Under the pieces are notes generated by a model. It did no database searches. It was not told the origin of the DNA and saw only the letters and a program-made list of their open reading frames with translations. Both the position numbers and the translations under genes were made by a program. Source: Hemiscyllium ocellatum (taxonomy: Eukaryota). From it: a stretch of DNA of 64,000 nt. The first letter of the stretch is position 1, and each line of letters starts with the position of its first letter. Positions 3,833-64,000 of the stretch are shown piece after piece. The stretch spans positions 45,751,395 to 45,815,394 of the forward strand of contig NC_083411.1 in the NCBI RefSeq assembly GCF_020745735.1, read 5' to 3'.

Positions 3833-3842
3833 TGGTCCTTAC

Positions 3843-40310: not shown

Positions 40311-41926
40311 CATATCATACATTTCACCTTGGCAGGTAACATTGTATTCCAATTCAGAATATGTGGTGGGATATTTATCTTATTCATCAGTTTCATTTGG
40401 TCAGATTCCCATCAGTCTTATTAAGATAAACAAAAGTTCACAAATATACAATAAACATTGCAAGAAGGGTGAGCTTTTGGTTAGAAGAAAGTATTGTTAA
40501 CAAGAATTGATGTGTTTGGATGCATGTTCGTGAAAATCAATTTATCGAAAAGAATTCCAGTGAAGCAGAATGCAACAGTATGATATTTGACAGCAGTTAC
40601 AGATACAGCAATGATAATGTTTAGATCAGTAATTCTGCATCATAAGATTTGCATTGAGTGGGCATAACTCAGTCCCTCATCTTTTCTCTCTGCAGTATCT
40701 GATTTGCTGTTGCGATTTCTTCCCAATCATTTTTCCTGTTCTGAGCAGCTGGACCTGACATCATTCTGACATTGAGTTTCACCCATTGTAATGACAGGAA
40801 TCAGTGATGGGTGTCTGGAATGATGGAATATACATAATCCAACAGGGTATACAGAACTCTACCACACCATAATCCTTTGAGTGAAGTAATTTCTCCTCCT
40901 CTCAATCCAGAATGATTGTTGCTTTATGCTAAGATTGATTTTAGAATCTCTGACCAAGGGAAACAGACTCTCAGCAATTATCCGGTCAAATGCTTCATAA
41001 AGTTATCTATCTTAATGAAATATGTTCTCTTCATCTGAACTCCAGATTTACTCAGTCTCTCAGCATAATACAAGCCCCACGTCAATGGGACCAACATAAT
41101 GAAACTTTACTGATGCAATGATTTCATTTCTTAAATATAGAGGCCAGGCCTACACACAGTGCTGCAGGTGTAACCTTACCAAAACCTGTCCAATTTTAGA
41201 AAGACTTCTTGACCCTGAACTTCAATCCTCCCTCTATAACAGACACTTTGCCATTTGTTTTCCTAATTGCTTGCTGCAGCTGCCTGTTGACATTCTGTTC
41301 TCCTTGTCTGAGCACATCCAGATCTCTCTGAACATCACCATTTGGTAGTTCCACATTCTTGCAACCATCATGAATAATCTTCCAGGTATCTACACTGTAC
41401 TCAAACTGCCATCTTGTTCTCCACTCTCTTGACCTGTCTATCTCTTTTCACATTCTGTGTGTCCTCCTCGCAGCTTACCTTTCCACTCCACGTTATATCA
41501 TCAGCAAATGTACAAACATTAGTCTTTGTCTCTTCATTGGCAATCAGGAGTTTAGGTTGGTAACAGCTGTGGCCCAATATTGATCCTTGTGGGATGCTCC
41601 TATTCAGTGAGTTCCTAAATGTAAACTGCGCCATTAAGGTCTACTCGCTGCTTCTAGTTTACTAACAAATCCTCTATGCATTCTACAATGTTGCTCCCCC
41701 AACTCAACAATTCCGCAAACAATTCCACAAAAGAATTGCTCCTGTTTTTATCTGTCAGCCAGCACTCCCTGATTAGGGCTGTTAAGCTGGTCCAATCAGG
41801 GACTCATTCCATGAAATCCCCAGGCTTATAATCACCACACCCAGGGACATAGGCCTATTGTTTATCTTGTAGCCTCTCCTGGGGTGTTTACAAATGGGGC
41901 CAGTACCTCTGACTCTGCCTTGGATA

Positions 41927-44317
41927 CATAGAACATAGAACATAGAAGGATACAGCGCAGTACAGGCCCTTCGGCCCTTGATGTTGCGCCGACCGAATCC
42001 TACCTAACCTATACTAGCCCAATAACTTCCAAATGCCTATCCAATGCCCGCTTAAATGACCATAAAGAAGGAGAGTTCACCACTGATACGGGCAGGGCAT
42101 TCCATGAACTCACAACCCGCTGTGTGAAGAATCTACCCCTAACATCTGTCCTATACCTACCACCCCTTAATTTAAAGCTATGTCCCCTAGTAACACCTGA
42201 CTCCATTAGCGGTAAAAGGTTCTTAGTATCTACCCTATCTAAACCCCTAATCATGTTATACACTTCTATCAGATCTCCCCTAAACCTTCTCTTCTCCAAT
42301 GAGAACAGCCCCAAGTGCCTCAGCCTTTCCTCATAAGATTTTCCTACCATTCCAGGCAACATCCTGGTAAACCTCCTCTGCACTCATTCTAAAGCTTCCA
42401 CATCCTTCCTATAGTATGGCGACCAAAACTGCACACAATACTCCAGATGAGGCCTCACCAGAGTCCTATACAACTGCAACATGACCTCAGGACTCCGGAA
42501 CTCAATTCCTCTGCCAATAAAGCCCAGTACACCATATGCCTTCCTCACAGCACTATTTACCTGGGTGGCAACTTTCAGAGATCTGTGTACATAGACACCA
42601 AGATCCCTCTGCTCATCCACACTACCAAGTAGCCTACCATTAGCCCAGTAATCCATCATCTTGTTATTCCTACCAAAGTGAACGACTTCGTACTTAGCTA
42701 CATTGAATTCCATTTGCCACATTTCCGCCCAGCTCTGCAACTTATCTATATCCCGCTGTAACCTACCACTTCCTTCCTCACTATCCACAACTCCACCGAC
42801 TTTTGTGTCATCCGCAAACTTGCTTACCCAGCTTTCAAGTCCTTCCTCTAGATCATTTATAAAGATAACAAAAAGCAATGGTCCCAAAACAGATCCTTGT
42901 GGTACACCGCTAGTAACTGCGCTCCAAGATGAACATAATCCATCAACTACTACCCTCTGTCTCCTTCCAGCCAGCCAATTCCTAATCCAAACCTCTAATG
43001 TATCCTCAATGCCATACCTCCGAAGTTTTAGCATTAGCCTACCATGGGGAACCTTATCGAACGCCTTACTAAAATCCATATACACAACATCTACTGCTTT
43101 ACCCTCATCCACTTCCTTAGTAACCTTCTCAAAGAACTCAATAAGGTTTGTGAGGCACGACCTGCCCTTCACAAAACCATGCTGGCTATCCCTGATCACG
43201 TTATTCCTACCCAGATGTTCATAAATCTTATCCCTTACCATTCTCTCTAAGACTTTGCCCACCACTGAAGTCAGACTCACTGGCCTATAGTTACTAGGGC
43301 TATCCCTACTCCCTTTCTTGAACAATGGGACCACATTTGCTATCCTCCAGTCCTCTGGTACTATTCCCGTAGACAATGACGACATAAAAATCCAGGCCAA
43401 TGGCTCTGCTATCTCCTCCCTAGCTTCCCATAGGATCCTGGGGTAAATGCCATCAGGCCCAGGAGACTTATCTATATTCATCCTTTCCAAAATTCCCAAA
43501 ACCTCCTCCCTGCATATTTCCAGGGCATCCATTCTAATTATTTGTGATTCCATATTCACATCAGCAACAGTGTCCTGTTCCTGAGTGAATACTGATGAAA
43601 AGTACTGATTTAATGTCTCTCCAATCTCCTCCGCCTCCACACACAACTTCCCACTACTATCCTTGACTGGACCGATACCTACCCTAGTCATCCTTTTATT
43701 CTTGACATACCTATAGAAAGCCTTTGGGTTTTCCCTAATCCTACCAGCTAAAGACTTTTCATGTCCCCTTCTCGCTTCTCTTAGCTCCCTCTTTAGCTCC
43801 TTCCTGGCTACCTTATAACTCTCAATCGCCCCAACTGAACCTTCACGCCTCATCTTTACATATGCCGCCTTCTTCCCTTTCACAAGGGACTCCAATTCCT
43901 TACTAAACCACGGCTGCCTCACAAGGCCCTTTACACCATGCCTGACTGGTGCATACCTATCGAGGACACGCAGTAGCTGCTCCTTGAACAATCCCCACAT
44001 CTCATTAGTGTTCTTCTCTTGAAGCCTGTTTTTCCAATCCACACATCCTAAGTCATGCCTCACTGCATCATAATTCCCCTGCCCCCAGCTATAGCTCTTG
44101 CCCTGCGGCGCACGATTATCCCTCTCCATCACTAAAGTAAAAGTCACCGAGTTGTGGTCACTGTCCCCGAAGTGCTCACCTACCTCCAAGTCTAACACCT
44201 GGCCTGGTTCATTACCTAGAACCAAATCCAATATAGCCTCCCCTCTTGTTGGCCTGTCGACATATTGTGTCAGGAAACCCTCCTGCACACATTGTAAACC
44301 CTCCTGCACACATTGTA
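41927..44317 (-). mobile_element. Young 5'-truncated CR1 LINE inserted into the Gypsy remnant; copy 2 only
   Basis: Near-intact ORF2 (endonuclease end SDH, full RT) with a single TGA at 42384-42386; (ttctatg)n tail; empty site at ~10853. Confidence 0.96.
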
Positions 44318-47020
44318 AGGTGTACAGGTGACATATAGCGGACACTAGGTCAGCGCCTGCACAGGGAGTGTCTCGGAATAAGTTTGTCCTCTTCTTCAGG
44401 CGGTAAAAGCATGGAGGCTGCAACATGTGCCGTGTCCATCTCAGACACCGAGGCTTTTTTTGACAATAGATGGAGGAAAAAGCCCACAATTTTCCACAGC
44501 CTTGCCAGCTGTTCTAAGGGGCTAGCTATGTTTTGCTCTTGCCCTGTTTGTGAGTTTGCAGCTTTGATGTGGTCCATATGTTTGTTCAGGACCGCCTCAC
44601 CGACCCAGACTTTGTACGCCACAGAACCTGACCTTGCGTCAACCATGCCTCTTACCCACACAGGGCCATTTCCATGGTTTTGGCACCAAATGTCATCCCC
44701 TGAAGTAAACCTGCTCGATTGCTTAAAGCAGTCTTGTGTCAGACATTAGTGTTTATGATGGCTTTTTATATCCTCGCCCACTCCCCAACATGTCAGGGAA
44801 GATCAGATTTAACCTGGCATGGAGCCTTCTCCCCATTTGTGACTCTGCTGGAGCTATTCCAGTGGTTGCATGTGGGGTGGTCCTATTATCAAACAGGAAC
44901 CAGGTCAGTTTAGTATCGAGTAAACCTATGGGCTGTTTCTTTGAGCCTGCCTTCAATGTTTGGATGGCTCTTTCTGCTCGACCATTGGACAAGGGATGAT
45001 ATGGAGCTGTCATCATATGCCGAATGCTATTCAATTTTAGGAAACACTCGATGTCCCCGCTGGTAACGGATGACCTATTGTCGGTGACCAACACTTCCAG
45101 GAGACTGCGGATTACAAAGGATGCTCAAATCTTTGCTACGGTCCCTGTGGATGATGAATGAACTTTATGCACGTCCAACCAATTTGAGTAGGCATCCACA
45201 ATATTGAAGAATATTGTGACCACGAAAGGGCTGGAATATTCCAAGTGTAACCAAATCCCGGGTTTACCCAACTATTCCTGTGAATGTTGGGGAGATGCTG
45301 GCAGTACATTTTGTCCTTGTTGGAACTCTGGGTAACGCCCCACCAATGTGAACATATCTATATTCAATCCTGGCCACCAGACATAACTTCTCGCCAACAT
45401 CTTTATTTGGATAAGCCCTGGATAACTTTGATAGAGTATCCGGTAGCAACCTTTCCTCGGGACAATCACTCATGTCCGACATAATAACATGGCGTCCTCT
45501 CCAGTGGTGTAGACTCGCCAGGTCCAGAAAGATTGCTATTCTGGTTGTGATGGCCCTTATATTCGCGGCATCACTACCAGCTGTTTCAGTTTTGCTCAGA
45601 GTGCATCTTTTTTGCGTCCACACGTTGAAAATGGATTCTTCCAGTGGCAGCACTACCACTGGTGTATCTGCCAGTGGGAGGCAGTTCAGGGCATCCGCCA
45701 TTGCTACTTGGCCTCCTGGACGATGTAATTGTGCACACTTGGAATGAGAACCATTCCTGAATTCGACCAGAAGCTAATGTAATCTAATAGAATGCCTACA
45801 GTGTTGAAATAGGCCATTTAGCCAAACAAGCTCACAGCGACCCTTCAAAGAGTACCCCACCCAGACCCATTCCCCTACATTTACTCTACATTTTACCCCT
45901 AACTAATTCAGCTCACCTACACATCCCTGAACACTACAGGCAATTTAGCCTGGCCAATTCAGCTGACCTGCACATCTTTGGGATGTGGGAAGAAACCTGA
46001 ACACCCGGAGTAAACTCATGCAAAATGTGCTAACTCCACACAGACAGTCACCCGAGGGTGAAATCGAACAAAGGTCCCTGGCACTGTGAGGCAGCAATGC
46101 GAACCACTGAGCCACCGTGCTACCCTGGATGACACAGGCTTGTTCTCTTTGAATAGCCCTAGCAGTGGTTTGTGGTCTGTTATTACAAATTTACATCTGT
46201 AAAGGCATTGATGTAACTTAACCAATAGCATAGGCTTCAGCCAAAGTCCAGAAAGCCGACATCATTGGGCATTCCATTCCATTGAGCCACTGGTAGCCAC
46301 CAGGACCCAAATCTGTCTGCGGAGGCATCACATGTCAGCACCAGATCTCACTTGCAGCAATAGGGTGCTTACACCTTCAATGATGAAAGCTACTTCCTCA
46401 TTTCCCTAACGACGATATCTTGGCTGCAAGACCATTTCCAAGGCTGACCCTTTTCCAATGGCAGATGTAAGGGTGCCAGGATTGAGGCCAGGGTAATGTA
46501 TGAACTTTCCATAATAATTTACCAATCCAAGGAAAGACCTAATCTCCACTATTGACATGGGAGTCCAGCACATTTGTTCATCCTCACGTTATCTTCCAAT
46601 GTTTCTTGTCCATTCTGTAGCCCAATGTACCTGGAACACACATTTTTAACTTCAAATGCATATGTCCATGTGCAAGAAACGGCTAAGGACTATGTCCAAG
46701 TTCTCAACGTGCTCTTCATTGGTCTTCTCTGTTATTACTGCATCATCTAAATAAATAGCAACCTCGGGTTGACCACCAGGGTAGAACATTGTAAAATGTT
46801 CTCCATCATCCACTGAAAAATAGTACAGGCTGATGATTGCTCAAATGGCAGTCTTATATATTGGTACAAGCCCTTATGGGAATTAATTGTCGCATACTTT
46901 TGGAAATCCTCATTTAACCACAATTGCAAGTACACATGTCTCATGTTCAACTATGTGAAGGACATTACCCCTGTGCCAGTTTTGTATATAAATCCTCAAT
47001 GTGAGAGTTTGGGTATGTGA
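44318..47020 (-). mobile_element. Decayed Gypsy element, copy 2 (its 3' part continues at ~41700-41926, beyond the CR1 insertion)
   Basis: Paralogous ORF fragments at 44350, 44753, 45272, 46016 and 46747. Confidence 0.88.
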
Positions 47021-50000
47021 GAGTTGGGCTGACTGCTCTGTAGTTCCCAGCCCTTTCCTTACTGCCCTTCTTAAATAATTGCTCAACATTAGCTACCCTC
47101 TATCTTCTGGCACCTCCCTTGTGCCTGTCGATGATACTAATATGTCGACTAGGGATCCTGCAGTTTCTTCGTTAGATTCCCACAATTTCTTGGGATACAC
47201 TTGATCAAGTTAAGAAACTTCCAGAATAAATGGGAATGGATTTGGGAGGTGACATCATTTTCAATGACTTTGGAGAGAAAAGGGACATTGATTCTTTGCA
47301 AGTACCGTATATACTCGAGTAGAAGTCGATCTCATGTAAATGTTGACCCCATGTTTTTGGTCAAAATGTTAGGATTTTTCCATAGATCTCATGTAAAAGT
47401 CAACCTTGGTTATTCACAGATAACAAATCAACACTTATGAGTCAGTGACCGTACCCATTACGCTCCAGTCCGGCTTTCCAGTCCACCAGCTGTCACGTTC
47501 TCTCCAGGTTTTCAGAATTGCTGTAATTCTTGTGTATTGCATCTTTATTTGTTTAGAGATCAGCTGGGCTTCTGTTACCGATACGGTATGTATTTTAACG
47601 GGCACTAATTTGAACTGAGGCATCCCTATAATAGTCAACCCCATAAACTTAACTTTATAAATTAGTGAAAAAATTCAATTATTTCTCGAGTATACTGGAC
47701 TGGTATCTGGAATACAGTACGACAATACCACTCTTCCGTAGCAAGCAGAATGGAGGCATTTATTTTGGCGATAAATATTCAATATGGCCATAATTCTTTC
47801 TCCTTTTGTTGTTTATTATTTGACCTAGAGATCTGGATCTTGTTTGGCCAGTTTTGACTCACACTAAGCATGATTTTCATCCCCTCAAAAACAATACTCG
47901 TGTCATAGTCGAACCCCTAATTTCAGCTTAAACAAACCATCCAAAAAATTGGACTTTTACACCAGTATGTACAGTTCTTAGGGATTGAACAGATAAGGAT
48001 CTAAAAGTATCTGACAACTGGAGGAATCTCTTCATTTCAAAGATGTGGGTCAAATCTTTGGCCCTTGATATTGGTGATTTTGGCGGCAGGAAGGGCACCT
48101 CATTAGACAGAGAATTAAGTGTAGGAAGGCCCACGGTCAACTTTCCCATCCAGCAAATCGTGTCCATCCAATCGAGACCCTTAAGACCAAGTAATGGCCA
48201 TTCAGGGGTCTTAGCTGACTGCTGCTGGGGTTAACCCCATGGCAAGCTGGCATGTTACTATGCAGCATGCACTATCACTGTTCTCCTGCTGCACAACCAC
48301 CAAATGAAGGACCTGTGCTCTGAAAGCGAGTGCTTCCAATTAAACCTGTTGGACTATAACCTGGTGTTGTGTGATTTTTAACTTTGTACACCTGAGTCCA
48401 ACCCCAGTATCTCCAAATCATGCAGACAGCTTGTCACCTCGGGAGGAATGGGCAAGGATCTCTTGATCCAAAGCCAATCAGTATCTGATCAAGGGATTAG
48501 ACATCTCACAGGTGGGTGCTTGTCTGTCGTTGGACAGAGCCCCAACCACAAAACCTACTCCCCTGCCACCCCATCACTTCCCTTTCTCCTAGTTCACCCT
48601 GCAATCCTTGGACTCTGAATGGGTGTATCTCCAGCAGGAGCCATGGCCTCCTCTATGACATGCCAATATAAGACCCATTGGCCTGTGTTTAGTCAGCAGC
48701 TCCATCCAAATGAGACCTCCATCCCCGTGCATCTGATTCCCGGGGAAGTCCACTTGTGGCCTTGCCACTGCCTAATTGAATTGTGATGCAGTGGGCCTTC
48801 CCTGGAAGAGGCAGTGTTAGTCTCTCACTCACTCTCCTGCCTTCAGAAGTTTCTGATCATATTTTGGAAGGAAACAAAACTTAATAATGTGGTAAGGAAG
48901 GAAGAAATCCAAAATAATTTGAACTCTTTGAACAATAACTTTGTTAACGGTTCCCAAAATGATAATCAATTATTTATTGATAACACAGCATTTAATTAGA
49001 ACACTTTCCGATACAAATGTCAACGCAAGCTGAACTCCAATGATATGGTAATGCCATAAAAACAGATACAGAACATGAGCTTGACTGAAAATAAACTTGC
49101 CTTTTATTTAATGTGTTTAAAAAGGGCAGCTTGATTCAGAACAAAGGAATCTTGGTCCATGAGCATATGTTGTAACAGTCATCCTTGCAATCACTGGTCC
49201 TCCTGTCTTATAGTATCTCAGCAGCTGGGACCCATGGGGGAACTGGCAGAGGGTAAGTGAGTAATATGGTCGTAGAGGTGAGTGTGTCAGCTTTAGTACA
49301 ACATGAACCTTGGAAATACAAAGTTGTTAGTGGAAGGGTTTCTTTTATGAATTGTGTCCGAAAATGACAACAGATTACAGTTTATGTCAATATGGTTTAA
49401 AGTGAGGGGAAAGACTTAAAAAGGCCCTGAGGGGTAACCTTTTCACACAGAATGTAGAGCGTGTCTGGAATGAGATGCCAGGGGAAGTGGTGGAGGCTGG
49501 TACAATTACAACATTTAAAAGGCATATGGGTGGGTATAAGAGTCAGAAGGGTTTAGAAGGATATGCCAAATCCAAGCAAATGGGACGAGGTCAGATTGGA
49601 ATGTCTGGTCAGTGTGGATGACTTGGACCAAAGAAACTGTTTCTGTGGATGTTGCAATTTATGATTCCAGTATCCTGTACTGTCTTCACTGGGAAGCTGC
49701 TGTCAACAGCATGTCTGCAATTTACATCTGCTTCAGTCGCCTGCCTCGCATTTGCAAATGCTACCTCTGTATTGTGAGTGACGGCTTTTGGAGCAGAACA
49801 GTGGCAGTCGTGGAAAATTACTTTGAAGTGGTTTGTGGTCAGTTCTGAATGTGATTTTGTCTCCTGGAAGTAGTTATTGATGAAAATGTTCACAAGCAAA
49901 GACAATGGCCAAGCATTCTTTGTCCATTCATGTGTAATGTGTTCCATTCTGTTAATGTCCTGGAACTAAATGCGACCCGCTAACCTTGCTGCATCAGGGT

Positions 50001-50907
50001 GCTGCAAGTCCTGTCTCACTGGTACTGAGGGGTGGGACCTTGATGCCAAGTGCAGTCTCTCTCCCATCACCTGTGCAGTTCACTGCTTTGGACCGTGTTT
50101 GGATCTAAGCTGCCATGAGGCCAGGAGCTGAGCGGGCCTGGTTGAACCAAACTGAGCATCAGAGAGCAGGTTATTGTTGAGCAACTGTTGTTTGATAGCA
50201 ACATCACTTTGTTAATGATTGAGAGGAGACTGCAAAGGCAGTTAGTGGTTCATTATTCGATCTGTGTTATTTGTCAGTTAGATTCAAATGGACAAATTGC
50301 CTCGGGCCTTGGCAGGGTGTGGAGCTGGTGCTTTCAGTCGTATTGCTGCATGTTGTCAGGGCCCTTCGCTCTTACATTATCCAGTGCCTTCATCCATATT
50401 TTGATATCATGTATATTGAGATCTGCAGAAAACTGAAATCTTTTCTGACATTCTCTGCATTGTGCAACAACTGTTCTAACGCCAGGTGAGTGGGCTGTAC
50501 ACTGAATGTGCTGATGGGTTTAACAGCATTGGAAAACAAGCTTTCTCTTGATAAGGCTTTATGTTGGGATTGTTATATGCTCGGAGGAAGACTATACTGT
50601 TAACCTTAACACAGGTTTAAAATGTCATGTGAATGATAGCTATGAAGGTGGAAAAAGGGACCAATGTGGAAATTACCCATAATCAAAAATAAACACAATC
50701 CCAGTGAATTTTCTTTCTGTAGGAGTCCATTTCAGTCATAATGCTGTTGTCATACTTTAGAAGACACCATTACAGAGAAGGAGCTGAATGTTAGAAAGAG
50801 CTGTCCATCACTGTCATTGTGGACACACAGATATTTCTGACCAGAGGAATAGTGGGCTGAATGGATACATCCTGTGCTGGATGATTCCAGCAGCAGGGAA
50901 CACGTAT

Positions 50908-50913
50908 TTTATT
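50908..50913 (-). terminator. Candidate polyadenylation signal, gene B
   Basis: AATAAA ~230 nt after the stop. Confidence 0.55.
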
Positions 50914-51144
50914 TGTATTTCATGAAGGGATAGCCAGTGTGCCAGGAATATGTGAAGTTAATTGGAGTCTTAAAATTCACCTTATTATACACCTCAAAAA
51001 AGATGCTGTTTTTTCTGCAATAACATTTCCTTGATATCAGGGAGGAATATTTTCAAAAATGAGTCAGTCACAAGGGAATATTTGAGTAAAGTTTCATCAG
51101 TATTTAGGGCTAGATCCCATTTATCCATCAACTGCAGTATCCAC

Positions 51145-52408
51145 TCACTGCACTGATGTTTGGTTTATATCATTTTTGGTCCCAAATGCAGCTGTCACCA
51201 CTTTCTGTGCACTCTCTGTAAGATCATCCAGTGCAGCACTCAGCAGTTTGTAGGTCACAAGGAACGAAGATCCTGCTCCGAAGATGGAACCAATCACTGG
51301 GATGATGTCAAGGGCGAGCTCGATTGCTGAAATGGTGACAGCAGCAGCACCCCAGGCCAATCTGTTTATAACATCGGGGGTTATCTCCCCGCCGACCAGG
51401 GGAGTTGTCACCACTGCTTTCAGATCCTCCACAGGTTTCCCTGCCCTCTTGGCCAGACTTTGAAGAGAGGAATCATTCAGACCCAGACATTGACGAAAAT
51501 GTACTATTCCTCCAATTACTATCCCAATGTCACAGCCCAGGGAGACTCCAGGAACTGGCACTGCCCCAATTACCCCAGACAGTGTCGCCAACATCCAGAC
51601 TCGTTTCCTTAGCTCTTTCCTTTTCTTCTCCACAACCTCCGAGTTGATATTTGGGAGGGCGAGGATGTATACACTTTTCTTTATATTCGGAAGGCCATCT
51701 TCCAGAGCTTTATTTAACAGACTAAAATCATACAGATTCAGGTCAAAGTTTGATATCAGGAACACTCTGGGTGATGGGATCCCAGCCTCTTGCAGCTTGC
51801 TGATACAGTCATTCCTGATCTTCTCCAGTTCTTCCTCTTCATTAAATTGCCTCCCTCCCTTTCTGTTTGAATCAAGATCATTATCAATTTTTGATCGAAC
51901 AAAATAGAAATTCTTTCCAAGCCGTTTGATCTCTCTGGCAAGTTTTGTGTCATTTTCTGTGAATCGACAATATGAGATGATGATGAAAAAATCATACTTT
52001 TTAAATTTCATTTCCTTCAGGTATTTATTCGCAGGGAATTTTTTGGTTCCAATTCCTGGCAAATCCCAGAAACAAACATTCGGCAGGTGGGGATGTTTGT
52101 ATCCCGTTGGCTCCATTGTGGTTTCTATGTTACCAACTTCAGCTGCTCCCTCATCATCGAACTCAAGTCCTCTCATCGCATTGATGAAGGAAGATTTCCC
52201 TGCACCTGTTTCTCCTGTTACTGCAACATTAAGTTCTGTATTGTCCAGTTCAGTTACTTTCTGCTGTACCACTGTTTTAACCTTTTCCACTCCACCCATG
52301 TCATAATCAGACTTGAGTTTGGTGAGTTCTTCATCAGTGAAGAATGTAGAGTTTGATGATTCCACTGTTTCATCTTCTAAACAGTTTGAAGTTTCAGCTC
52401 GTTGATCT
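51145..52408 (-). CDS. irgc-like: IRG gene B, main coding exon (exon 3); immunity-related GTPase / interferon-inducible GTPase 5-like, GKS type
   Basis: G1 GETGAGKS, G3 WDLPGIG, G4 RSKID, FLISN. Acceptor ttttctttcag ends at 52409. The first ~72 aa of the 493-aa track ORF come from intron/TE sequence. Confidence 0.95.
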
Positions 52409-52433
52409 CTGAAAGAAAATAAGCTTAAATAAT

Positions 52434-53394
52434 GAGTTTTGAGAATATTTGTAGCTTCTGGAGGTTGAGTTTCTGGACGTAAGTTTACTCGCTGAGCTGA
52501 AAGGTTCATTTTCAGATGTTTCATCACCAAACCAGGTAACATCTTCAGTGAACCTCCAGATGAAGCAGTGGTGTTAGTGACCTTCTTTCTATTTATGTAT
52601 TTAGTTTCCTTGGGTTGGTGATTCATTTGCTGTTCTTTTTCTCAGGGACTGGGAAATGGGATCTAAGTCAATGTGCTTGTTGATAGAGTTGCGGTTGAAA
52701 TGCCAGGCTTCTAGGAGTTCTCGTGCATGTCTCTGTTCGGCTTGTCCTAGGATGGATGTGTTGTCCCACTCAAAGTGGTGTCCTTCCTCATCTGGATGTA
52801 AGGCTACTAGTTACAGTGGGTCATGCCTTTTTCTGGCTAGTTGATGTTCATGTATCCTGGTGGCTAGTGTTTGGCCTGTTTGTCCTGTGTAGTGTTTGTT
52901 AAATTCTTGCAAAGTATTTTGTAAATAACATTAGTTTTGCTTGTTGTCTGTTTCGGGCCTTTCAAGTTCATAAGCTGCTGTTTTAGTGTGTTGGTGGGTT
53001 TGTGGGCTACCGTGATGCCACGAGGTCGGAGTAGTCTGGCAGTCATTTCCGATATGTCTTTGATGTGGGGGAGAGTGGCTAGGGTTTCTGGATGCGTTTC
53101 TTCTGCTTGTTTGGGTTTGTTGGGGAAAAATTGGTGGACTGTGTTCATTGGGTACCGATCGTTTTGAATACTTTAAACTCTATGAACAAACATATCGACT
53201 TGGACCCCATTTACCACCCTCTGAAAAATAGAACAGCAAATGACATTACCAACCCAAGGGAACCTAAATACATAAACAGATAGTGGGTCACTAACATCAG
53301 TGCTTCACCAGAGGCTCACTGATGATGTTACCTAGTTAGGTGATGAAACATCTGAAAACAAACCTTCCAGCTCAGCGAGCAAACTTACATCCAG
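52434..53394 (-). mobile_element. Penelope-like element (second family) inserted just upstream of the gene B exon 3 acceptor
   Basis: 13-bp TSD aagcttaaataat (52421-52433, 53395-53407); TLPHIKDISEMTARLLR..NVIYKILC; inverted terminal repeats with hammerhead motifs at 52512-52551 (-) and 53316-53355 (+). Confidence 0.92.
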
Positions 53395-56103
53395 AAGCTT
53401 AAATAATCCCTAGAAATGTTCAGAGCCTCCTAACACACTTAATTTGTCACTGACTATTAAAATGAAATCATTGTTTTAAATATAACTGTTTGTCATGGCC
53501 AATTTCTACAAAAGGTCTTGTGTGAGCAACGAGATGAATGTCAGTCATCCCTCTTACTGATGGACCCATTACATGTAGGTTCATTGCTACCACACTGGAG
53601 GATAATCATAGCCTTTCTCTCTCTTTCTAGAAAGTAGCAATCAAATGTCTACCTCCACACCCCACGTTCCTCTTCATCAGTCTATGAATCACCTTCCTTC
53701 ATTCTCCTAAGCCCTCCCAAAGGGGTGGTTCCAAACTGCTGTTTCTGAGGCTCAAGTGTCGTGATGGATCAAGTGAACGGAGGCTTGGTTAAAGCCCAAA
53801 CCCAGGGCCTTGCTGTTGCAGATACTCCTCTTGTGTTGAAGGACTGAAGAAGAGGAGAGATTAATAGGGTACAGGAGCTGTATACCTGCCTGAATACTTT
53901 CTTTACAAACAATATTGAGTAAGTGTAAAGTGTTGCACTGATTGGTTGTATTCTAGAGGAGGAAGACACAGAAGCTGTTTAGTTTAGGATGGCAAGGCAG
54001 CACGGTCACATGGTATGTGTGTCCTGTTGCATGTGAGAAGTCATGGATGCTATCAGTGACATAACCAACCACAAATGCAGATAATGGAACCAGTCATATA
54101 AACCTGAGCTCTGGGCTTTGCAGTTTGGATTGGCAGCTAGACTCACTATGATGCATCTGCAGGGCTGAGATCAAGGTGAATAGCATGTTCACAGAGGTAG
54201 TCAAACTGCAGGCTAGGATCTTGTAGACAGAAGGGACATGGGTGACTATCAAACAGTCCTAGAAAACCAGGAAGAGAACCCTAATTAATTTTCTAGTTTG
54301 GATATTGATGAAGGCATTTATGAGTGCAGTCAGAGACAAGTTCATGGCTCTATGGGTGGTTCAGCTGGACAAGAGGAGAGAATGATAAAGGATTCATTAG
54401 TTAAGAGGACTGGCATTTGTGTTACTCCCTGATACCAGGGCCAACAGTGTCATTAGTGATTGCAGGACATTCTTCTGGGAGAAGCTGAACTGGTGGAGGT
54501 CGTGGTGATTGTGACTTGGGTAGGGACAGCAACTTTCAGGGAGCTGGAAACGAGATTGAAAAGCAGGGGCACTTGAGCAGTAACTTCAGAATTCCTTCCG
54601 TCTCATCTGAGAGTCATTATAGAATTAGGAAAATGGAGCTTATGGCTGGGGAATCTTGTGGAGAGAGGGAGAGCAGGGAGAAGACGAGCATCTTTGTAGG
54701 GAGATTCACTTGTGCTGCTGGGGGTTTAATGTGGTTTAGAAAGGGAATGGGAAGCTGAGAAACTCCAATTTGAGTGAAACAAATCCCCCCAAAAAATTCC
54801 GAATTATAGGCACTGCATCTGAAGGCATGCTGTGCGGCATTCACAAAAGATTAATAACGTGAAAGGACAATTTGAGGTAAATGAGTTAATTGCTATTATG
54901 GAGTTGTGGTTCCACGTGTACTAAATTTGGAAGGTGAATATCCAAGGATATTTAGCATTTATGAAGGACAGGCAAAACGGAAGTGGCAGAAACTTCTGAT
55001 CAGAGATGAAATCAATACATTAGTAAGACAGGATCTTAGGCCAAAGGAACAATATGTAAAATCAATTTGGGTGGAGCCATGAAACAGCAAAAGGTAGCAA
55101 ACATCGGTGGGAGTTGTTTATCTGTCACCATAACACGCATGATTATAAGATACAGGAGCAGAATTAGGCCATTGGGACCATCAGGACTGCTCCACCATTT
55201 GATCATGGCTGATATGTTTCTCAACATCATCCTCCTGCCAAGTTCCTGTAACCGTTGATTCCCATTGCCTTCCCTCCTTTTTCAAAGGAATTAGCTTAGA
55301 AAAAGTTGTAATCCTGATGATTGCAATTTCAAAACCAAGTGAAGGACCAAGAAAAGATTTAAAAATGGAAAAGAGAATCATGAAAGTAAACAAGCAAGGA
55401 ATTTCAGGGTAATCTATAACAGTTTCTTCAGGTATGTTAAATGGAAAATAAACTAGCTCCAACAAATGTAGGCAAATTGCAGTTGGAGTTTGAAGAACAG
55501 GCAGAGAAACTAAATGGTTACTGTGTCTGCCTTTGTAGAAGATACAAAAAAATCTCCCAGAAATACAAACAGACGAAGAGAGTATGGAACTGAGTGACTG
55601 AAAGAAATAAGCATTCATAAACATTTAATGCTGGAAAAGTTAACTTCATTGAAGGCTAGTAACTTTCCTGGACCAGGTTAGCTTCATCCCAGACGGATAC
55701 TCAATGTATTGGTGATTATCTTTCAAAATTCTGCAGATTCTGAAAACATTCCTATGGACTGAGAAGAGCAATGTTACACCATTATTCACAAAGGGAGGAA
55801 GAGGGAGAGCTGTTACCTTGACACCACTCACTGTTAAAATCTGTAAAAGATGTAATAAGTGGCTATTTGAAAAGAATGATAGAATTGTTCAGTGTCAACA
55901 TAGACTTGTGAAGGGGAAGTCTTGTTGACAAACTCATTGGTGTTTCTTTGAGGTGATTACTTTTAGCATTGATCCAGGAGAATCAGTGGGTTAGCTCCCT
56001 TTTGATAAGGTCCTATGTGGGTTTGTGAATGAAATTAGAAGGCATGGGGTTGGGGCAAAACATATAAATATAGCTAACAGTGAGAAAGCAGAAATTAGGA
56101 ATA

Positions 56104-56987
56104 CCGAACAACCTCAATTATCTGAGCAAGATACATTAAAGAGGAGTTACCGACACTGGTGTGCCGATTGCATCTTTTGTTTACAATGATGCAAAGTGAA
56201 GTTGGATAATCTGTACTGAAGAACATGTGGAAACTCTAGCAAAAACAAAGAAGCACAAGTACCAGCAACGGAATTTTTTTTAACATAAGAGTTAGCTGCA
56301 CAGCTCTTTGCAAAAGTAAGTGCTTTATTCCTGTCACTTTACCAGGCCACTCATGGAAAATAAGATAAAGAAAGTAAATGCATGAGCGAGGCGCTGCTTC
56401 TGTTTTTCTATCGTGATACTGCGTTCAGTGGGAACTGACAAATGCTCTTGTGATTGTAGAAGCTGTTCAGGACCTTGTTTAATGCTGGGATTTTCATATT
56501 TATGTGACAGTCAGGGTTTCATCCTTCTCAGTTTAACCAGACTTGTGCAACATGCTCCACGCAGCCTGGAATGTTGTTCTAGTGTTATTTCCTATTGCTA
56601 TAATCACAAGATACTTCCGAATAAAACATTTTAAAATTCTGCAATTTGCAGAATGCAAACATTAGTTAGTTTAAATAGCAGACTCATCAAAATTATAGAT
56701 TTAAACAGAGTCTCCAGTAGAGCACAACATTACATCCTCTACTTTCCTCCATAAATACGTAGAGTGCTTCAGGAATATTTCAGGATTTGATCTCCATTTA
56801 AGCAATATCCAGTGTTTGTATACATTTTAAATTGATTTACTGAAACAAAAACTCTGCAAACCATGCTTTTTTTTACATTTTGTGTTCAGTATGGCTTCTT
56901 TTGTTTACGATCAGGTGAGTTATCTGAACAGTTACCCAGACAAAATACTCCCCACCCGTCTCGTTCGGATAAATCAAGGTTGCTCTG
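56104..56987. mobile_element. Tigger/pogo-like non-autonomous DNA transposon; copy 2 only
   Basis: TA on both sides; imperfect TIRs ccgaacaacctcaattatctgagc / gttcggataaatcaaggttgctctg; empty site at ~26636. Confidence 0.7.
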
Positions 56988-57257
56988 TAAATAGATTATT
57001 GTCAAAAGTCAGACTGTTTACCAGTGGGATTTGGTAAGGATCACCACTTGATCCATGGCTGTTCACAAGATGCATAAATGGTGTGGATTTGGAGATCAGT
57101 TGTCAGATTTCCAAAGTTGCTGAAGATACCAAACTGAAATAAGTTATGAAGAGGATACAAGGAGGCCTCAACACGTCTTGGACAGGCTCAGTGAATGGAC
57201 TAAAGTATGACAGACAATAACAGCATAGCATGTGGAGCAGAGTCGGCCATTCAGCCC

Positions 57258-57337
57258 AGAGGAAAGATATTTAAAATCGATTATCCGAGCGAAATTGTGC
57301 CCGCCCATCTCGTTTGGATAATCGAGGTTCCTCTGTA
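57258..57337. mobile_element. End fragment of the same Tigger-like family, at a deletion junction
   Basis: ggataatcgaggttcctctg|ta; replaces ~700 bp present in copy 1 (~26908-27630). Confidence 0.6.
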
Positions 57338-58058
57338 TTCAACTCCTTTATCCAAAGTCATTAATTTATAATGTATATAATCATGGCCCCAGCATTGATC
57401 CCTCTGGCACTCCACTGGTTACAGTGAGAATTCCCTCATTATCCTAACTTTCTATATTCTTGATTTGCTAGCCAATCCTCTGTGCATACACATATACACC
57501 ATCAATACCATGGGCTCTTGTCTTAATCAGTGGACCTATGGGCAATACCTTATAGAACATCTTTTTGAAAATGCAAATATATGGCACCTTGTGCTTCCTG
57601 TTTATCCACCTGGCTGAATGCCTCCTGGAACAATTCTAATAAAAAAGGTGTCTGGTAAGATTTCCCTTTTGGAAAGCAATGCTGTCTTTGCTTGATTGCT
57701 TAGAGTCAACATTTTTCCAATGACAGTTGTTAAAATGGAATTGCACAGGGATTTGAGACCAGGTATAAAGATCCACTTCTATAAATCATGAGAGCCCAGT
57801 TAGCGTATTGCGTCTAGTTTTAGTCTCCGTTAAAGGAGAGATATACATTCGTTGAGGGAATGCAATGGAAGTTCATCACATTAATCTTGCGATGGTAGGA
57901 TTGTCATTTGAGGAGGAATTGAAGAAACTACATTTTGCATAAGGGTTGACTACATTGTCTCTGTTAAAAAAATCTGATCAAACATGACAGGTATTTATAT
58001 ATATATATGATGGCTTTTGAGTCTAAAATCTGGAACATAGTCTCCAGTTAAAAGGGAG

Positions 58059-58237
58059 TAAAAAGTGAGGTCTGCAGATGCTGGAGATCAGAGCTGAAAA
58101 TGTGTTGCTGGTTAAAGCGCAGCAGGTCAGGCAGCCCTTCATCAGGAATCATGAAGGGCTCATGCCCGAAACGTCGAATTTCCTGTTCCTTGGATGCTGC
58201 CTGACCTGCTGTGCTTTAACCAGCAACACATTTTCAG
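58059..58237. mobile_element. Short fold-back Penelope-derived insertion; copy 2 only
   Basis: 17-bp TSD ctccagttaaaagggag; empty site at ~28333. Confidence 0.88.
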
Positions 58238-58518
58238 CTCCAGTTAAAAGGGAGGCCATTTAAGAGGAGGAGGAATTCCTTCACTTAGATGGTGTTAGGT
58301 TGTTGTAAATTGCTGTCCCAGAGGGATGTGGAAGCTCAATCATGGAGCATATTCATGACAGAAATCAATTCAGTTCTGCAGAACAATCACATGGAGATCA
58401 TGAGGACCTAACCATGATCTAATTTACTGGAAGACCAGGCTCCATGAGCTGAATGGCCTTTTCCTGTTTCTATGTTCCTTTGAGCCTATGACAGAATACG
58501 AGGAGTTTCTTGACCAAC

Positions 58519-58538
58519 CTGGAGCTGGCTCCTCCCAT
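58519..58538 (-). CDS. irgc-like: IRG gene B, coding part of exon 2 (MGGASS-R); exon 2 spans 58684-58519
   Basis: Identical ATGGGAGGAGCCAGCTCCAG|GTTGGT; acceptor ctctctctactctccctctaacag. Spliced CDS is 1284 nt = 427 aa. Confidence 0.88.
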
Positions 58539-59237
58539 CCTCCTTCTGTGTCTCTCACTGCTTTCCCCGTCTGACTGCCCAGTGATTCCAGAGAACCCTC
58601 CTCACATGGGGGGGGGAGGGGCCAGAGGGTCGTAGCTCCTCCCACGATGTCACTTCTTCGTCTTTGGTTGTGTTCGGTTTTCTCCTGTTAGAGGGAGAGT
58701 AGAGAGAGTGAGTCGCAGCACCTTATTCGCCATCAGATAAAGTACAAGACTGGTGTGAGGAACCCCGTCCTTAATCAGAGTGAGGACAGGAACATGAACT
58801 TCATCCCAGAACATTTTACATCTTCACCCAGTCAGTGTGTGAGGGAAGGAGTGAGTTGTTAGATGTGTTTCACCTTCAATATTTTCAGGAAATTGCTCTC
58901 TTTGGGGAAACAGAGAAGGCAGGCTGAGTGGAAAATAGAAAAATATTGTGAGTGCAGGCTTTACTGTACAAATAAAGTTGTCTGAATGACCCTCCCTTTG
59001 ATTAATGTGTAAATTGGCTGGTATCTGGTGGTGATGTGCAGACACTGTGTGGCAAATTGCTACAAAGTTCCTGATGATTTGCCCCATTCCAGCTTTAGCC
59101 TCATGAACATGGCATTTTATGCTTCATTTCACCCATGGTTTTCATGATGTTGCTCCATTTACATATGAACTGGCCACAAATCTATTTGTTACTGAAAATC
59201 ACAAAATGGCTGATTTGTTACATCGGTAAAAACAAGG

Positions 59238-59595
59238 GCTGCACATGCTGGAAACCAGAGTCTAAATTAGAGTGGTGCTGGAAAAGCACAGCAGGAGCAG
59301 GAAAATCGACATTTCGGGCAAAAGCCCTTCATCAGGAATAGAGGCAGAGTGCCTGCAAAGTGGAGAGATAAATGAGAGGGGGATGGGGTGGGCAGAAAGT
59401 AGCATAGAGTTCAATAGGTGAATGGGGGTGGGGATGGAGCTGATAGGTCAGAGAGGAGGGTGGAGTGGATAGGTGGAAAGGAAAATAGGCAGGTAGTACA
59501 AGTCATGGAGACGGTGCTGTGCTGGAAGGTTGGAGCTGGGGTGAGGTGAAGGTGAAGCGGAAAGGGAAATGAGGAAACTGGTGAAATCCGCATTG
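59238..59595 (-). mobile_element. Penelope 3' fragment in intron 1 of gene B, with a hammerhead motif at 59304-59339
   Basis: AUUC-CUGAUGA-AGGGCUUUUGCCC-GAAAU-GUC-GAUU. Confidence 0.75.
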
Positions 59596-60052
59596 CGAGT
59601 CTGTTTCAGGACATAAAAGTATTTTTAAGCCAACGAGATATGCGCACTCAGCATTCGCACCCAAAAAAGTTTAAATTAATTTCATGCGTTTGTTTTTAAA
59701 CCCTACGGATAAGAAGAAACAAGATGATTTGTCCATATTGCCAAAGACTCCGAAGCAGTTTCTCAATGTTAACTTTCTGCCGAGTACAGTCTCCACATCC
59801 TGTCACTTGAAAACAACTCACTCCCTTCTCAACAGCACGACGAGACATTTTCTACAGTTTGCTCCGGGAACAGTTTCGCTTAGATTTGGCCTCCTGAAGA
59901 ATTCTTATTGTAAAACTTCAGAGTTCGAGGGGTGAAGCAGATCGATAGAGCCAGACTCTGCCCAAGTTGTGCTGTAATCCTGTTTAAATTTAAATGCAAT
60001 TCTCTCTGAATGTGACAGCTGCACTGTTTTGTTTCCATTTCCTGGTCCTTAC

Positions 60053-60148
60053 CTGCACTGTTTCCGTGGAGGGGGTGAATTTCTCCGTGTAGTTCACACT
60101 GAATGCACACCGAGATGTCTGTGATCTCGGCGTCGCACTCACTTTGTC
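60053..60148 (-). other. IRG gene B, putative non-coding exon 1
   Basis: Donor CAG|GTAAGG at 60053/60052; TATA-like tatttaaata at 60168-60177; CCAAT at 60211-60215. The start site is approximate. Confidence 0.72.
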
Positions 60149-60455
60149 AGGAAACAAGGAATCTGGATATTTAAATACAAATTTTGAAGGTCAATGCACA
60201 GCAAATCTGACCAATGAAAATCAAAGGCCAAGCAAGGTCACTTGTTACTGGGGAGATTTTGCTTTTACAGGTTACACAAAAAATGAGAATATAAACAAAA
60301 CACAACTTTACCCCAGACAAGAAGTTGGGAACTGGTATCTGCTTGAATTTCAGATGCAGTCACTGGGCTGGATAGTTGGAGATGGGTGGGTTCAAACAAT
60401 TCCTATTTGACGAAATGACTTTGCTCTGTTTAAAAGTAGCCCTTTAGCTCCATGA

Positions 60456-60473
60456 AGTTTCACTTTCAGGGAA
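60456..60473. promoter_or_regulatory. Overlapping ISRE + GAS element (gene B promoter)
   Basis: agtttcactttcagggaa; the C>A change keeps both consensus patterns. Confidence 0.8.
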
Positions 60474-60656
60474 TTCAGTTCATGAAAAGAATCTGTACAT
60501 CACTCAGCTGAGGAACACGTCAGCAGTTTCGATTGAAATTTCACCAACAAACAAAGATCAAACACCAGCCAACACTTAACCGGTTAAAGGACAAACGGCT
60601 CCTCAAAGCAAACCCATCAATCTCTGATTATAAAAACATTTTTAATCCATCTGTTC

Positions 60657-62107
60657 TGATGGACTTTAGGCTCAATCTACAAACTTATTTTCTTTTATGT
60701 GTGAGCCAAGTCCTGCGTGCTCTTTAAATAAAGCAATAGGAAAAAATATTTAATCTTACACTTCTGGTTTTACTCTATCAGTAAGTGGATAAAGTATACA
60801 GAGCTCTGGGTCTAAACCTTTCTGTCCCTGACAAACTACTAAGTAAGTCAGTTCACAAAGAACAAAGATGTATTCCTGCCCCGACCCAGTCTTTTATACC
60901 ATACAAAACATCATACCATCACTCAAGTGAGATTGTCTTCTAATTGGCTGTTGCTCTGACTCCATTCCCCGCCTCCTCGCATTCCCGGATGTCCGATCCC
61001 ACGTGACCCTCCTTTGTCTCTGAAAAGGAGCACCATGTGGCCTCCTTTCGGGCACGAAACGGCAGACTCGCAAACTTCCGGGGCGCGAAACGGCCAATCA
61101 CGTGACCTCCCGGCACTCTTCCGGAATGAGAAACAGGGAGACCACGTGACCAAGCCTGCGTCTCGGAGCATCACATGATCATCCTCTGCGCATGCATCAG
61201 AGGATCACGTGACCTCCGAGCGCCAAGGACACGCCCACTCAGACTCTACAATTTATTTTCCTGGTAAGTTTTATATATATATAATATGGAATTTTATATA
61301 TATATATGGAATTCAATGTAGCTAAGTGTGAAGTCATTCACTTTGGTAGGAGTAACAAGAGGATGGATTACTGGGCTAATGGTAGGCTACTTGGTCGTGT
61401 GGATGAGCAGAGGGATCTTGGTGTCCATGTACACAGATCTCTGAAAGTTGCCACCCAGGTAAATACTGCTGTGAGGAAGGCATATGGTGTACTGGGCTTT
61501 ATTGGTAGAGGAATTGAGTTCCGGAGTCCTGAGGTCATGTTGCAACTGTATAAGACTCTGGTGCGGCCTCATCTGGAGTATTGTGTGCAGTTTTGGTCGC
61601 CATACTATAGGAAGGATGTGGAGGCATTGGAACGAGTGCAGAGGAGGTTTACCAGCATGTTGCCTGGAATGGTAGGAAAATCTTATGAGGAAAGGCTGAG
61701 GCACTTGGGGCTGTTCTCATTGGAGAAGAGAAGGTTTAGGGGAGATTTGATAGAGGTGTATAAGATGATTAGGGGTTTAGATAGGGTCGACACTGAGAAC
61801 CTTTTACCGCTAATGGAGTCAGGTGTTACTAGGGGACACAGCTTTAAATTAAGGGGTGGTAGGTATAGGACAGATGTTAGGGGTAGATTCTTTACGCAGC
61901 GGGTTGTGAGTTCATGGAATGCCCTGCCAGTAGCAGTGGTGAACTCTCCTTCTTTATGGTCATTTAAGCGGGCACTGGATAGGCATTTGGAAGTTATTGG
62001 GCTAGTGTAGGTTAGGTAGGATTCGGTCGGCGCAACATCGAGGGCCGAAGGGCCTGTACTGCGCTGTATCTTTCTATGTTCTATGTTCTATGTTCTATAT
62101 ATTCACA
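60657..62107 (-). mobile_element. ERV 3' LTR (~655 bp without the nested CR1)
   Basis: On the minus strand PPT AAAAGGGGGAGT (62119-62108) is followed by TG at 62107. The LTR ends in CA at 60657, exactly where promoter homology resumes. CCAAT ~60945, TATAAAA ~60892-60898, ATTAAA 60749-60754. Confidence 0.85.
61306..62097 (+). mobile_element. Young CR1 3' fragment nested in a TA run of the ERV LTR
   Basis: Uninterrupted 234-aa ORF2 C-terminus, nearly identical to the 41927-44317 element; (ttctatg)3 tail. Confidence 0.95.
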
Positions 62108-62151
62108 ACTCCCCCTTTTGGTCTCATGAAAATGAGACCAACAAACCAGTT

Positions 62152-63410
62152 TTATGCATCACATTCACTCTCCGACACATAGTCCTCCCCTCTTGCCAGT
62201 GCCATGGTTTCCGCCGCTATTTGTGACATCTGGTAGGGTGGTGGAGCCTTCCCTTCAATTGCTGTAATAATTACCCTGTTCAACAAAGATCTGATACAGG
62301 GGATACAACAACATCCACACAACACGAACACAATGGTCATACCAGCTAGGGACATAAACACACACAATTAATCCTTTCCATTTCCCTACCCAGGAATCGA
62401 AAATGCCTCCTAGAGGGTTGTCAATACCTGAATGTTCATGCATTTCTTCAGACAAGGTTCTTAATCCTTCCAGGGCTCTGATTACCGAGCCATCAGGGGC
62501 TGTATTGTTGGGGATGAATGTACATTGATCTCCAAACATAGCGCACACTCCCCCTTTTCTGCCAACAACGTATCTAAGGCCATTCTATTTTGTACTGTCA
62601 TCAATGATGTCTCTGCCAGTTGTTCAGAGAGTCCCGCCATGGCGTCTCTAGTTCTATTGGCTAGCCTGAGTACATTGTAATGTACATAATTAATTCAATC
62701 AACGTTTTTATTCGGTGTAACTGGGAATAAAGCACTAATAATTGGGAGGTTCTCGAATCCTGTTGTTACCTGGTCTACCAACTTATATTCATGAGGTACG
62801 CCGCGGGGAACCCCTATTACAAAATAAAAGCTTCTGTCATCAATTCTACAGTAAATCTGTACCTTTTCAGAACCAGGATTAATGTTGAATCTTGTCAGGG
62901 TTAACAAGAGTGGATTTTTTAGCTCTTAGAATTGACCAAGTTGCCCCTTTGTCAGGCTCACATGGTCTCTAACCTCCCATCTATTATCCAAGGGTGACGA
63001 CTTCTTAGGTTTCCATTGTACCCTAGTCCATGTTACTACATTATCCCACGAAGGGCATGGGTCATAGTAAATAGTGTAGATACAAAGATATACATCATAC
63101 TCCCTCCAGTTCCCTGTATTTTGGCCACAGTCAATTTACTTGACATAAGTCAAACTGGTATATCAGTATATTGTATCACGCTTTTTATCATGTCTAATGT
63201 CTACCCGGCTCCCTTAACATTTGTCCATCTCTTGTCCCGCTGATCTCTTATTCCTGGGACTCTCTACTCGTCTGTGTGTTTGTCCCTCGCGGTTGATGCC
63301 CTTATTAACAGTATCATAACACTTATACCTAAAATAGTAAACACTCCCAACCTTAACGGCCTAGGATAATGTGGGCTAGTTACTAAAATAAACATGACAT
63401 TCGTGACACA
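62152..63410 (-). pseudogene. env: ERV env remnant (gamma-type TM; frameshifted, SU largely deleted)
   Basis: Immunosuppressive-domain-like VQNRMALDTLLAEKGG, eroded CX6CC (CAMFGDQC-TFIPNN), TM followed by CGCCCIPC. Confidence 0.85.
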
Positions 63411-63422
63411 AAAATTAAAAGT

Positions 63423-64000
63423 TTAAGACCCTTTTACTCTTTTTCTGTTCTTATTTGTTCTAGAGTTCTCGTTGGCGGGTCTGTGGCCGCACACTGGCTC
63501 CAATGGTACCAAGTGTCTCCTTTCCCTTGTAGTCGAACCGCATGAGATGTCCTTTCCACCACCTTGTAAGGTCCTGTCTACCGTGGCTCCAACCATTTCC
63601 GTTTGATCACCTTCAGCAGGACCCACTCTGTGGTGGATGGCGCCTGGCTCTGTAGGTCCCCCTTTTCCGATCCAACCTGTTTAGAGAAAGCTGAGACCAA
63701 AGCTGTTAGTTGATCATTATAAGGTTTGTACCTTATTGAGACTCCTCTCTCTATCATCTGTATTCCAGCTCCTGGTCCTGGAAACTGCTGCCCTGTTGTT
63801 AGCTCGTACGGGTTAAACCCTGTAATAGAGTTTACTGAGCTGCTAATGGACATTAAGGCTAAAGGTAGGGCATCCACCCAGCTTAACTTCGTTTGTGCAC
63901 ACACTTTTCCTATTTTCCCCTTTATGGACTGGTTCATTCTCTCCACTTTTCCCTGTGACTGAGGATGGTACACCGTTCCTAAAGCTGCTTCTACTTCTTG
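63423..64000 (-). pseudogene. pol: ERV pol, integrase C-terminal part (continues beyond window)
   Basis: YHPQSQGKVERMN..WVDALPLALM..PYEL; frameshift near the GPY motif. Confidence 0.88.

Follow-up and report, generated by a model that had tools for sequence, protein, structure and literature searches.

A 64,000-nt stretch of Hemiscyllium ocellatum DNA (contig NC_083411.1, positions 45,751,395 to 45,815,394; hereafter the window) is, judged by its sequence, a tandem array of IRG ("interferon-inducible GTPase 5-like") genes of an orectolobiform shark, with the genes on the minus strand. At one of them, gene B, a class I endogenous retrovirus (ERV) has integrated in the orientation of the gene, and its 3' long terminal repeat (LTR) directly adjoins a promoter which the paralogs A and C keep free of the element. 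A first-pass annotation of the window had described this arrangement, and the observation of an ERV adjoining the gene B promoter is hereby confirmed, with corrections. We hold its structural part, that is the integration, its orientation, the anatomy and motifs of the LTR, and the intactness of the gene and of its interferon-stimulated response element (ISRE), with high confidence. The same annotation proposed that gene B had captured a retroviral promoter or enhancer, in parallel to human IRGM. From what the sequence offers, the LTR probably adds little to gene B, as a bystander or a minor contributor, and gene B is most likely driven mainly from its native promoter.

The insertion becomes visible in the comparison of the three promoters. 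A promoter/exon-1 block of about 1 kb is present in three copies (A, 3402–4449; C, 34325–35944; B, 59616–60659) with 95–98% identity. Exactly three instances of the 13-mer bordering the break exist in the window, ending at 4446, 35941, and 60656. Beyond the break A and C stay alike for more than 1.1 kb, and B switches to TG..., which is the ...CA end of the LTR on the minus strand. An insertion on the strand of the gene is thus borne out by the point at which the homology of copy B ends and the LTR terminus follows, and the promoters of A (4446/4447) and C (35941/35942), colinear across the site, indeed represent the empty state. The junction lies 183 bp from the ISRE and the gamma-activated site (GAS), in agreement with the distance of about 180 bp given earlier; the value of about 510 bp to exon 1 fits as well, with the start of exon 1 a modelled one. 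The one sure structural effect is that the sequence formerly upstream of −510 has been displaced by several kb. The coordinates of gene B and of the element are collected in the table.

Features of gene B and the adjoining ERV, in window coordinates
Feature	Position	Strand	Basis or remark
ERV pol remnant, C-terminal half of integrase	63437–64000	−	PDB integrases; extends past the right end of the window
ERV env remnant, gamma-type	62120–63436	−	Translation, PDB, and Pfam TLV_coat (E 0.05, weak)
Polypurine tract AAAAGGGGGAG	62109–62119	−	Sequence read; directly 5' of the LTR
First 9 bases of the 3' LTR (starts TG)	62099–62107	−	Separated from the LTR body by the nested LINE
Nested 5'-truncated CR1-like LINE 3' fragment, (TTCTATG)n tail	61306–62098	+	Antisense to ERV and gene
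Main body of the ERV 3' LTR (U3-R-U5)	60657–61305	−	Ends ...CA at 60657
Host/LTR junction	60656–60657		Empty sites 4446/4447 (A) and 35941/35942 (C)
Native promoter, gene B	60146–60656	−	ISRE 60456–60467; GAS-like TTCCCTGAA 60465–60473; TATA-like TATTTAAATA 60168–60177; 97.6% identical to copy A
Putative non-coding exon 1, gene B	60053–60145	−	Donor CAG/GTAAGG, last exon base 60053; without ATG; start modelled only
Exon 2, gene B (coding mini-exon)	58519–58684	−	Acceptor aacag/G; ATG at 58538; donor CAG/gttggt
Exon 3, gene B (large coding exon, IIGP GTPase domain, to stop codon)	51145–52408	−	Pfam IIGP, E 6e-97

Followed on the minus strand from position 64000 downward, the element shows an integrase remnant, an env remnant, a polypurine tract, and the LTR. 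With an MLV-like integrase and a gamma-type env it is, by sequence comparison, a class I endogenous retrovirus, an identity that follows from the integrase matches in PDB, the MLV-integrase domain in related proteins, and the gamma-type matches of the transmembrane (TM) subunit. The integrase remnant has one in-frame stop in its visible part. Compared with PDB integrases, its open stretch matched prototype foamy virus integrase (PFV IN) best (E 6e-9), and Pfam rve_3 was matched weakly. Related proteins carry PF00665 and some of them the MLV-integrase C-terminal domain PF18697; identity to them does not exceed 69%, so that no near-identical copy was found in the protein collection. The env remnant is, at 1.3 kb, short for an env and contains 14 to 41 stops per frame, with a longest open run of 109 codons, and its TM motifs are spread over two frames, which implies at least two frameshifts. 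For one open piece, all PDB matches (8/8) were gamma-type TM subunits (syncytin-1, syncytin-2, HERV-T Env, and MoMLV p15E), each of them weak (E 0.06–0.9). A 97-residue env piece returned only noise from PDB, and Pfam gave nothing or weak matches for most of the env and pol open pieces. Directly 5' of the polypurine tract, positions 62120–62139 form a perfect hairpin with an 8-bp stem (GGTCTCAT tttc ATGAGACC).

The LTR is interrupted by a fragment of a long interspersed nuclear element (LINE), which was absent from the first-pass annotation and is a correction to it. Without this insertion the LTR measures about 660 bp and has TG...CA ends (62107 to 60657). The fragment of 788 nt is 96% identical to 41926–42713, where a LINE that carries an RVT_1 open reading frame (ORF) has its 3' end. 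This relative of the same CR1-like family (41926–44489) has a 701-codon open ORF, within 41928–44323, and lies in the second repeat unit of the array; it is missing from the first unit and therefore was inserted after the ~95% duplication. No second copy of the LTR or of the ERV interior was detected in the window, and no Rfam family in 58000–64000. Literature searches yielded nothing on shark IRG genes or on the present ERV, and no more than surveys of a general kind on the gamma-type env ERVs of fish, where these elements are common; one of them lists 46 orthologous groups as shared within Chiloscyllium (bioRxiv 10.1101/2021.11.23.469661).

The age of the element is bracketed from two sides. 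The nested LINE, which differs from its relative at 33 of 788 positions, was inserted after the ERV, so the ERV is the older of the two. In the three-way alignment of the promoter blocks (1041 columns) we counted 15 private substitutions in B, 6 in A, and 18 in C; if the ERV entered after the block of B had separated, it would be younger than about 1.4% divergence. A very young element is nevertheless a poor fit to the env, which is far too broken for a divergence of about 1%, and to the contrast between the promoter block, where B is 96–98% identical to A and C, and the gene bodies (B, 49592–58713; C, 16272–28805), which are only 79–92% identical. This mosaic divergence suggests gene conversion or a partial re-duplication of the promoter block. 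Either the provirus was defective at integration, or the promoter block was homogenised later by a gene conversion whose tract reached up to the ERV.

The LTR carries the motifs of a promoter that faces gene B. On the minus strand a CCAAT box (60943–60947) is followed, 45 bp on, by TATAAAAG (60891–60898), and from both motifs a transcription start near 60865 is predicted; the core promoter and start proposed in the first-pass annotation were thus located on the right strand and at the expected spacing. Its description of the LTR as CpG-rich also held. The U3 region (60950–61245, 296 bp) has a GC content of 59.5% and an observed/expected CpG ratio of 0.95 (window, 0.28; ERV interior, 0.45), is CpG-island-like, and ranks among the top 300-bp windows of the stretch. 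All four GTCACGTG boxes of the window fall into U3 (61000–61213), where 0.55 would be expected. They presumably resemble USF/TFE-type (CLEAR-like) E-boxes, which we take as a lead only. Within the same interval the four GTCACGTG(A/G) boxes are accompanied by two degenerate ones, at a spacing of 30–55 bp. U3 further holds two CCGGAAG (ETS) motifs, the only TTTCGCGC (E2F) motif of the window, and a GC box. The poly(A) signal expected for R/U5 is represented by an ATTAAA at 60749–60754, behind which the sequence is T-rich. A pattern scan of the LTR (60657–61305) for GAS (TTCNNNGAA), ISRE/IRF (GAAANNGAAA), and NF-kB sites gave no match, and no tandem enhancer repeat was found in U3. The consensus patterns for ISRE, GAS, ETS, E2F, and the E-box were taken from established knowledge. 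The motifs of the LTR recall a promoter of housekeeping or germline type and not one that responds to interferon.

We considered the retained CpGs as a sign of an unmethylated LTR and rejected this, because the adjoining host block has diverged by at most about 1.4% and little CpG decay would be expected even if the LTR were methylated. As the age is uncertain and little decay is expected at 1–2% divergence, CpG retention in U3 is no sign that the LTR is unmethylated, and CpG richness is without power to separate a young element from an unmethylated one.

A co-oriented 3' LTR with promoter motifs has entered one of three otherwise matching IRG promoters, and in this sense the structural premise of capture holds. 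The proposal of capture itself is drawn from position and motifs. RNA starting near 60865 would contain R-U5 (about 210 nt), host DNA, and the native promoter, and would then reach consensus splice donors at 60143 and 60053; the geometry allows such RNA to join exon 2 through either of them. The exon-1 donor at 60053 named earlier fits the gene model, and a second full-consensus donor, AAG/GTGAGT at 60143/60142, is present 90 nt upstream of it. As obstacles, such RNA would meet two ATTAAA signals, the LTR's own about 110 nt past the predicted start and another in the host flank (60641–60646). Its leader would measure about 960 nt and hold seven upstream ATGs (uATGs; short upstream ORFs), where the native leader has one.

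Between the LTR and exon 1 the interferon-type promoter is kept. With both strands of the 64 kb counted, the ISRE GAAAGTGAAACT has just three occurrences, one per promoter, and in copy B the GAS-like site overlaps with it. While A (4255–4263) and C (35750–35758) have a perfect GAS palindrome, TTCCCGGAA, B carries one substitution (TTCCCTGAA). This change is a transversion and not a CpG deamination, it affects only the ERV-bearing paralog, and the resulting site still matches the looser TTCNNNGAA pattern. The interferon element of gene B, previously called intact, is therefore unchanged in its ISRE but one base off A and C in its GAS.

Gene B itself is intact in structure. Its predicted exons, joined as they stand, encode 427 amino acids in three exons without internal stop, and the product is colinear with a Chiloscyllium punctatum protein and 93% identical to it over 427/427 residues. 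The P-loop GETGAGKS fits GxxxxGKS, the GKS class of IRG (p47) GTPases, and the N-terminus MGGASS is of the myristoylation type. Annotated relatives start with MGGASSRDQ..., a start that the large exon alone cannot encode, and a mini-exon matching it is found at 58538–58519 in gene B and at 28632–28613 in gene C. In gene B this exon 2 sits between exon 1 and the large exon; as it carries an acceptor (58685–58686), a non-coding exon 1 must exist upstream. Only TATTTAAATA places the exon-1 start near 60145. About 100 nt upstream of the start codon, inside exon 2, a degenerate copy of the start-codon motif (GTGGGAGGAGCT..., 58629–58645) suggests a small internal duplication in the 5' untranslated region (UTR). 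A 493-codon ORF (51145–52626) was rejected as the product of gene B, since the exon-3 acceptor comes only after its first 72 codons, most of which belong to a foldback insertion; annotated relatives, which start with the spliced MGGASS mini-exon, contradict it as well.

That foldback is part of a wider pattern, as transposon insertions lie near functional sites at all three paralogs. In intron 2 of gene B it spans 961 bp (52434–53394), with arms of about 228 bp in inverted orientation (84%), and stops about 25 bp short of the exon-3 acceptor; gene C lacks it. Through this insertion the large ORF gains a spurious extension at its N-terminus (ATG at 52626). In copy C, a foldback element resembling a miniature inverted-repeat transposable element (34860–35422, about 560 bp, 180-bp inverted arms with 92% identity, 13-bp target duplication CTCACTTTGTCAG) sits exactly at the AAG/GTGAG donor-like site and the predicted start of exon 1; fragments related to it are scattered through the window. 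The LINE fragment nested in the LTR belongs to this pattern as well. Since insertions are common at all three paralogs, position alone is weak evidence for selection.

In the reading we favour, a class I ERV has integrated in gene orientation 183 bp upstream of the ISRE/GAS of paralog B, and the visible part is the 3' end of the provirus, with an integrase remnant, a broken env, the polypurine tract, and a 3' LTR that was later split by a LINE. Gene B would still be driven mainly from its own interferon-type promoter, and the LTR would contribute no more than a minor share of read-through transcripts or weak enhancer activity. We favour it because gene B and its ISRE are intact, two ATTAAA signals and a leader with seven uATGs stand in the path, insertions are common in the array, and the provirus is decayed. 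Some observations weigh against it: the core promoter of the LTR is intact, with a correct spacing between CCAAT and TATAAAAG; U3 is CpG-island-like, with ETS and E2F motifs and a dense, non-random set of GTCACGTG boxes; the LTR, less than 1.1 kb away, is near enough to act on the native start; and a long LTR-derived leader does not prevent use, as that of IRGM exceeds 1000 nt (PMC1297648). In the alternative proposed by the first-pass annotation, a captured 3' LTR would serve as an extra, interferon-independent promoter or enhancer and add constitutive or tissue-specific expression to interferon induction, in convergence with ERV9-driven IRGM. The LTR is close to gene B and on its strand, its CCAAT and TATA motifs are intact, two consensus donors downstream could link LTR-started RNA to exon 2 of an intact gene, and its CpG-island-like U3, which combines housekeeping-type motifs (four E-boxes, two ETS motifs, E2F, GC box) with a lack of ISRE, GAS, IRF, and NF-kB sites, resembles the ERV9 U3 "without interferon response elements" (PMC1297648). 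However, the poly(A) signal and the second ATTAAA lie in the path, the leader would gain six uATGs, CpG richness may merely reflect limited age, and the native promoter is retained, unlike in IRGM, so that a new one is not required. In addition, an upstream provirus can occlude its own 3' LTR, which is the general phenomenon of retroviral promoter occlusion. We therefore regard capture as unlikely. In its most explicit form, the E-box/ETS/E2F-rich U3 would provide an intact IRG effector with interferon-independent transcription, be it constitutive, germline- or proliferation-linked, or driven by USF/TFE-type E-boxes, and would represent a second retroviral promoter capture in the IRG family, independent of that in IRGM and, in contrast to it, additive to ISRE/GAS instead of replacing them; this version seems distinctly unlikely.

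The opposite effect would be that the insertion lowers or narrows the expression of gene B, by silencing that spreads into the promoter 180–500 bp off, by read-through interference, or by displacement of upstream regulation, and that the gene is heading towards reduced use. The provirus does abut the promoter, the upstream stretch common to A and C over more than 1.1 kb is displaced in B, the GAS of B is no longer in the perfect TTCCNGGAA form kept by A and C, and a foldback lies about 25 bp before the exon-3 acceptor. Nevertheless, the ORF, the splice sites, and the ISRE of B are intact, the protein is colinear with annotated relatives, the CpGs of U3 are retained, and the altered GAS still fits TTCNNNGAA; we thus give this possibility a low probability. 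A break left at an LTR end by rearrangement, by duplication, or by the joining of assembly pieces, and not by integration at all, would be compatible with the single visible flank of the element, whose 5' LTR and target-site duplication lie beyond the window, and with an array that is a mosaic of old and recent duplication. Yet the break matches the canonical ...CA terminus of an LTR within a 3-base alignment ambiguity (60656–60659), the LTR follows the polypurine tract at the expected distance, and A and C are colinear across the site, which makes such an origin very improbable. The bystander insertion remains the reading that we prefer.

The wider locus is consistent with a duplicated IRG array. 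Using Pfam, the IIGP/IRG GTPase domain was identified in two large minus-strand ORFs, 17850–19061 (E 7e-94) and 51145–52626 (E 6e-97). The closest database proteins come from C. punctatum (93% identity), H. ocellatum (90%), C. plagiosum (88%), and Rhincodon (84%). Self-comparison showed a tandem repeat of about 31–34 kb with mosaic divergence: 1–16135 and 30900–49608 are about 95% identical, while most of the gene bodies reach only 79–87%. The window thus contains the promoter of gene A, whose body lies beyond the left end, gene C (promoter 35423–35944), and gene B (promoter 60146–60656). The predicted product of gene C (17850–19089) has 419 amino acids, stops 8 residues short of B and the relatives, and has the P-loop GGSGAGKS.

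If LTR-started transcripts of gene B exist, they would represent a convergent repeat of the ERV9–IRGM case, about 450 million years removed. The locus would then offer an internal comparison, as of three near-identical promoters only one has the LTR, and the influence of a retroviral promoter on an interferon-gated defence gene could be read from it. If no such transcripts exist, gene B would be one more case of heavy transposon traffic in fast-evolving immune gene arrays.

Transcripts of human IRGM start in an ERV9 element whose U3 is without interferon elements, and expression is constitutive (PMC2644816, PMC1297648; Bekpen et al. 2009, 2005). The precedent was stated correctly in the first-pass annotation. 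The shark locus shares with it an IRG-family gene with an LTR directly 5' of it and in its orientation, core promoter motifs in this LTR, and a U3 without interferon elements; an LTR-started mRNA would likewise have a long leader. While the start of IRGM has been mapped inside ERV9, that of the shark LTR is a prediction from motifs. Furthermore, the ERV9 LTR replaced the lost promoter of a truncated, once-dead, single-copy gene, whereas in the shark the ancestral interferon promoter has been kept, with an intact ISRE and a GAS-like site between the LTR and exon 1, and the gene is full-length and of the GKS type. The shark LTR is also the 3' LTR of a partly visible provirus from an unrelated family, and two ERV-free paralogs exist beside it.

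Interferon-responsive LTR enhancers of the MER41 type, with STAT1/IRF1 sites, have reportedly been described near immune genes by Chuong et al. in 2016. The shark LTR similarly lies close to a gene of the interferon-stimulated type, but it has no GAS, ISRE, or IRF motif, and the interferon elements of gene B are host sequence common to the ERV-free paralogs. In classical promoter insertion by avian leukosis virus (ALV) and murine leukaemia virus (MLV), the 3' LTR of an upstream, co-oriented provirus activates a cellular gene, in somatic, tumour-selected events with documented chimeric RNAs. The arrangement of an upstream provirus in the same orientation, with its 3' LTR facing the first exon, is the same in the shark, although here the element is germline, decayed, and known from DNA sequence alone. 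Finally, in mouse Irga6 and Irgd separate promoters serve alternative untranslated exons at the 5' end (PMC1297648), so that several 5' UTR exons and promoters are tolerated upstream of an unchanged coding sequence, as would be the case for gene B. Because IRG genes tolerate alternative 5' exons, an added LTR start would leave the protein unaltered; the alternative promoters of the mouse genes, however, are host-derived and interferon-responsive, while the shark LTR is retroviral.

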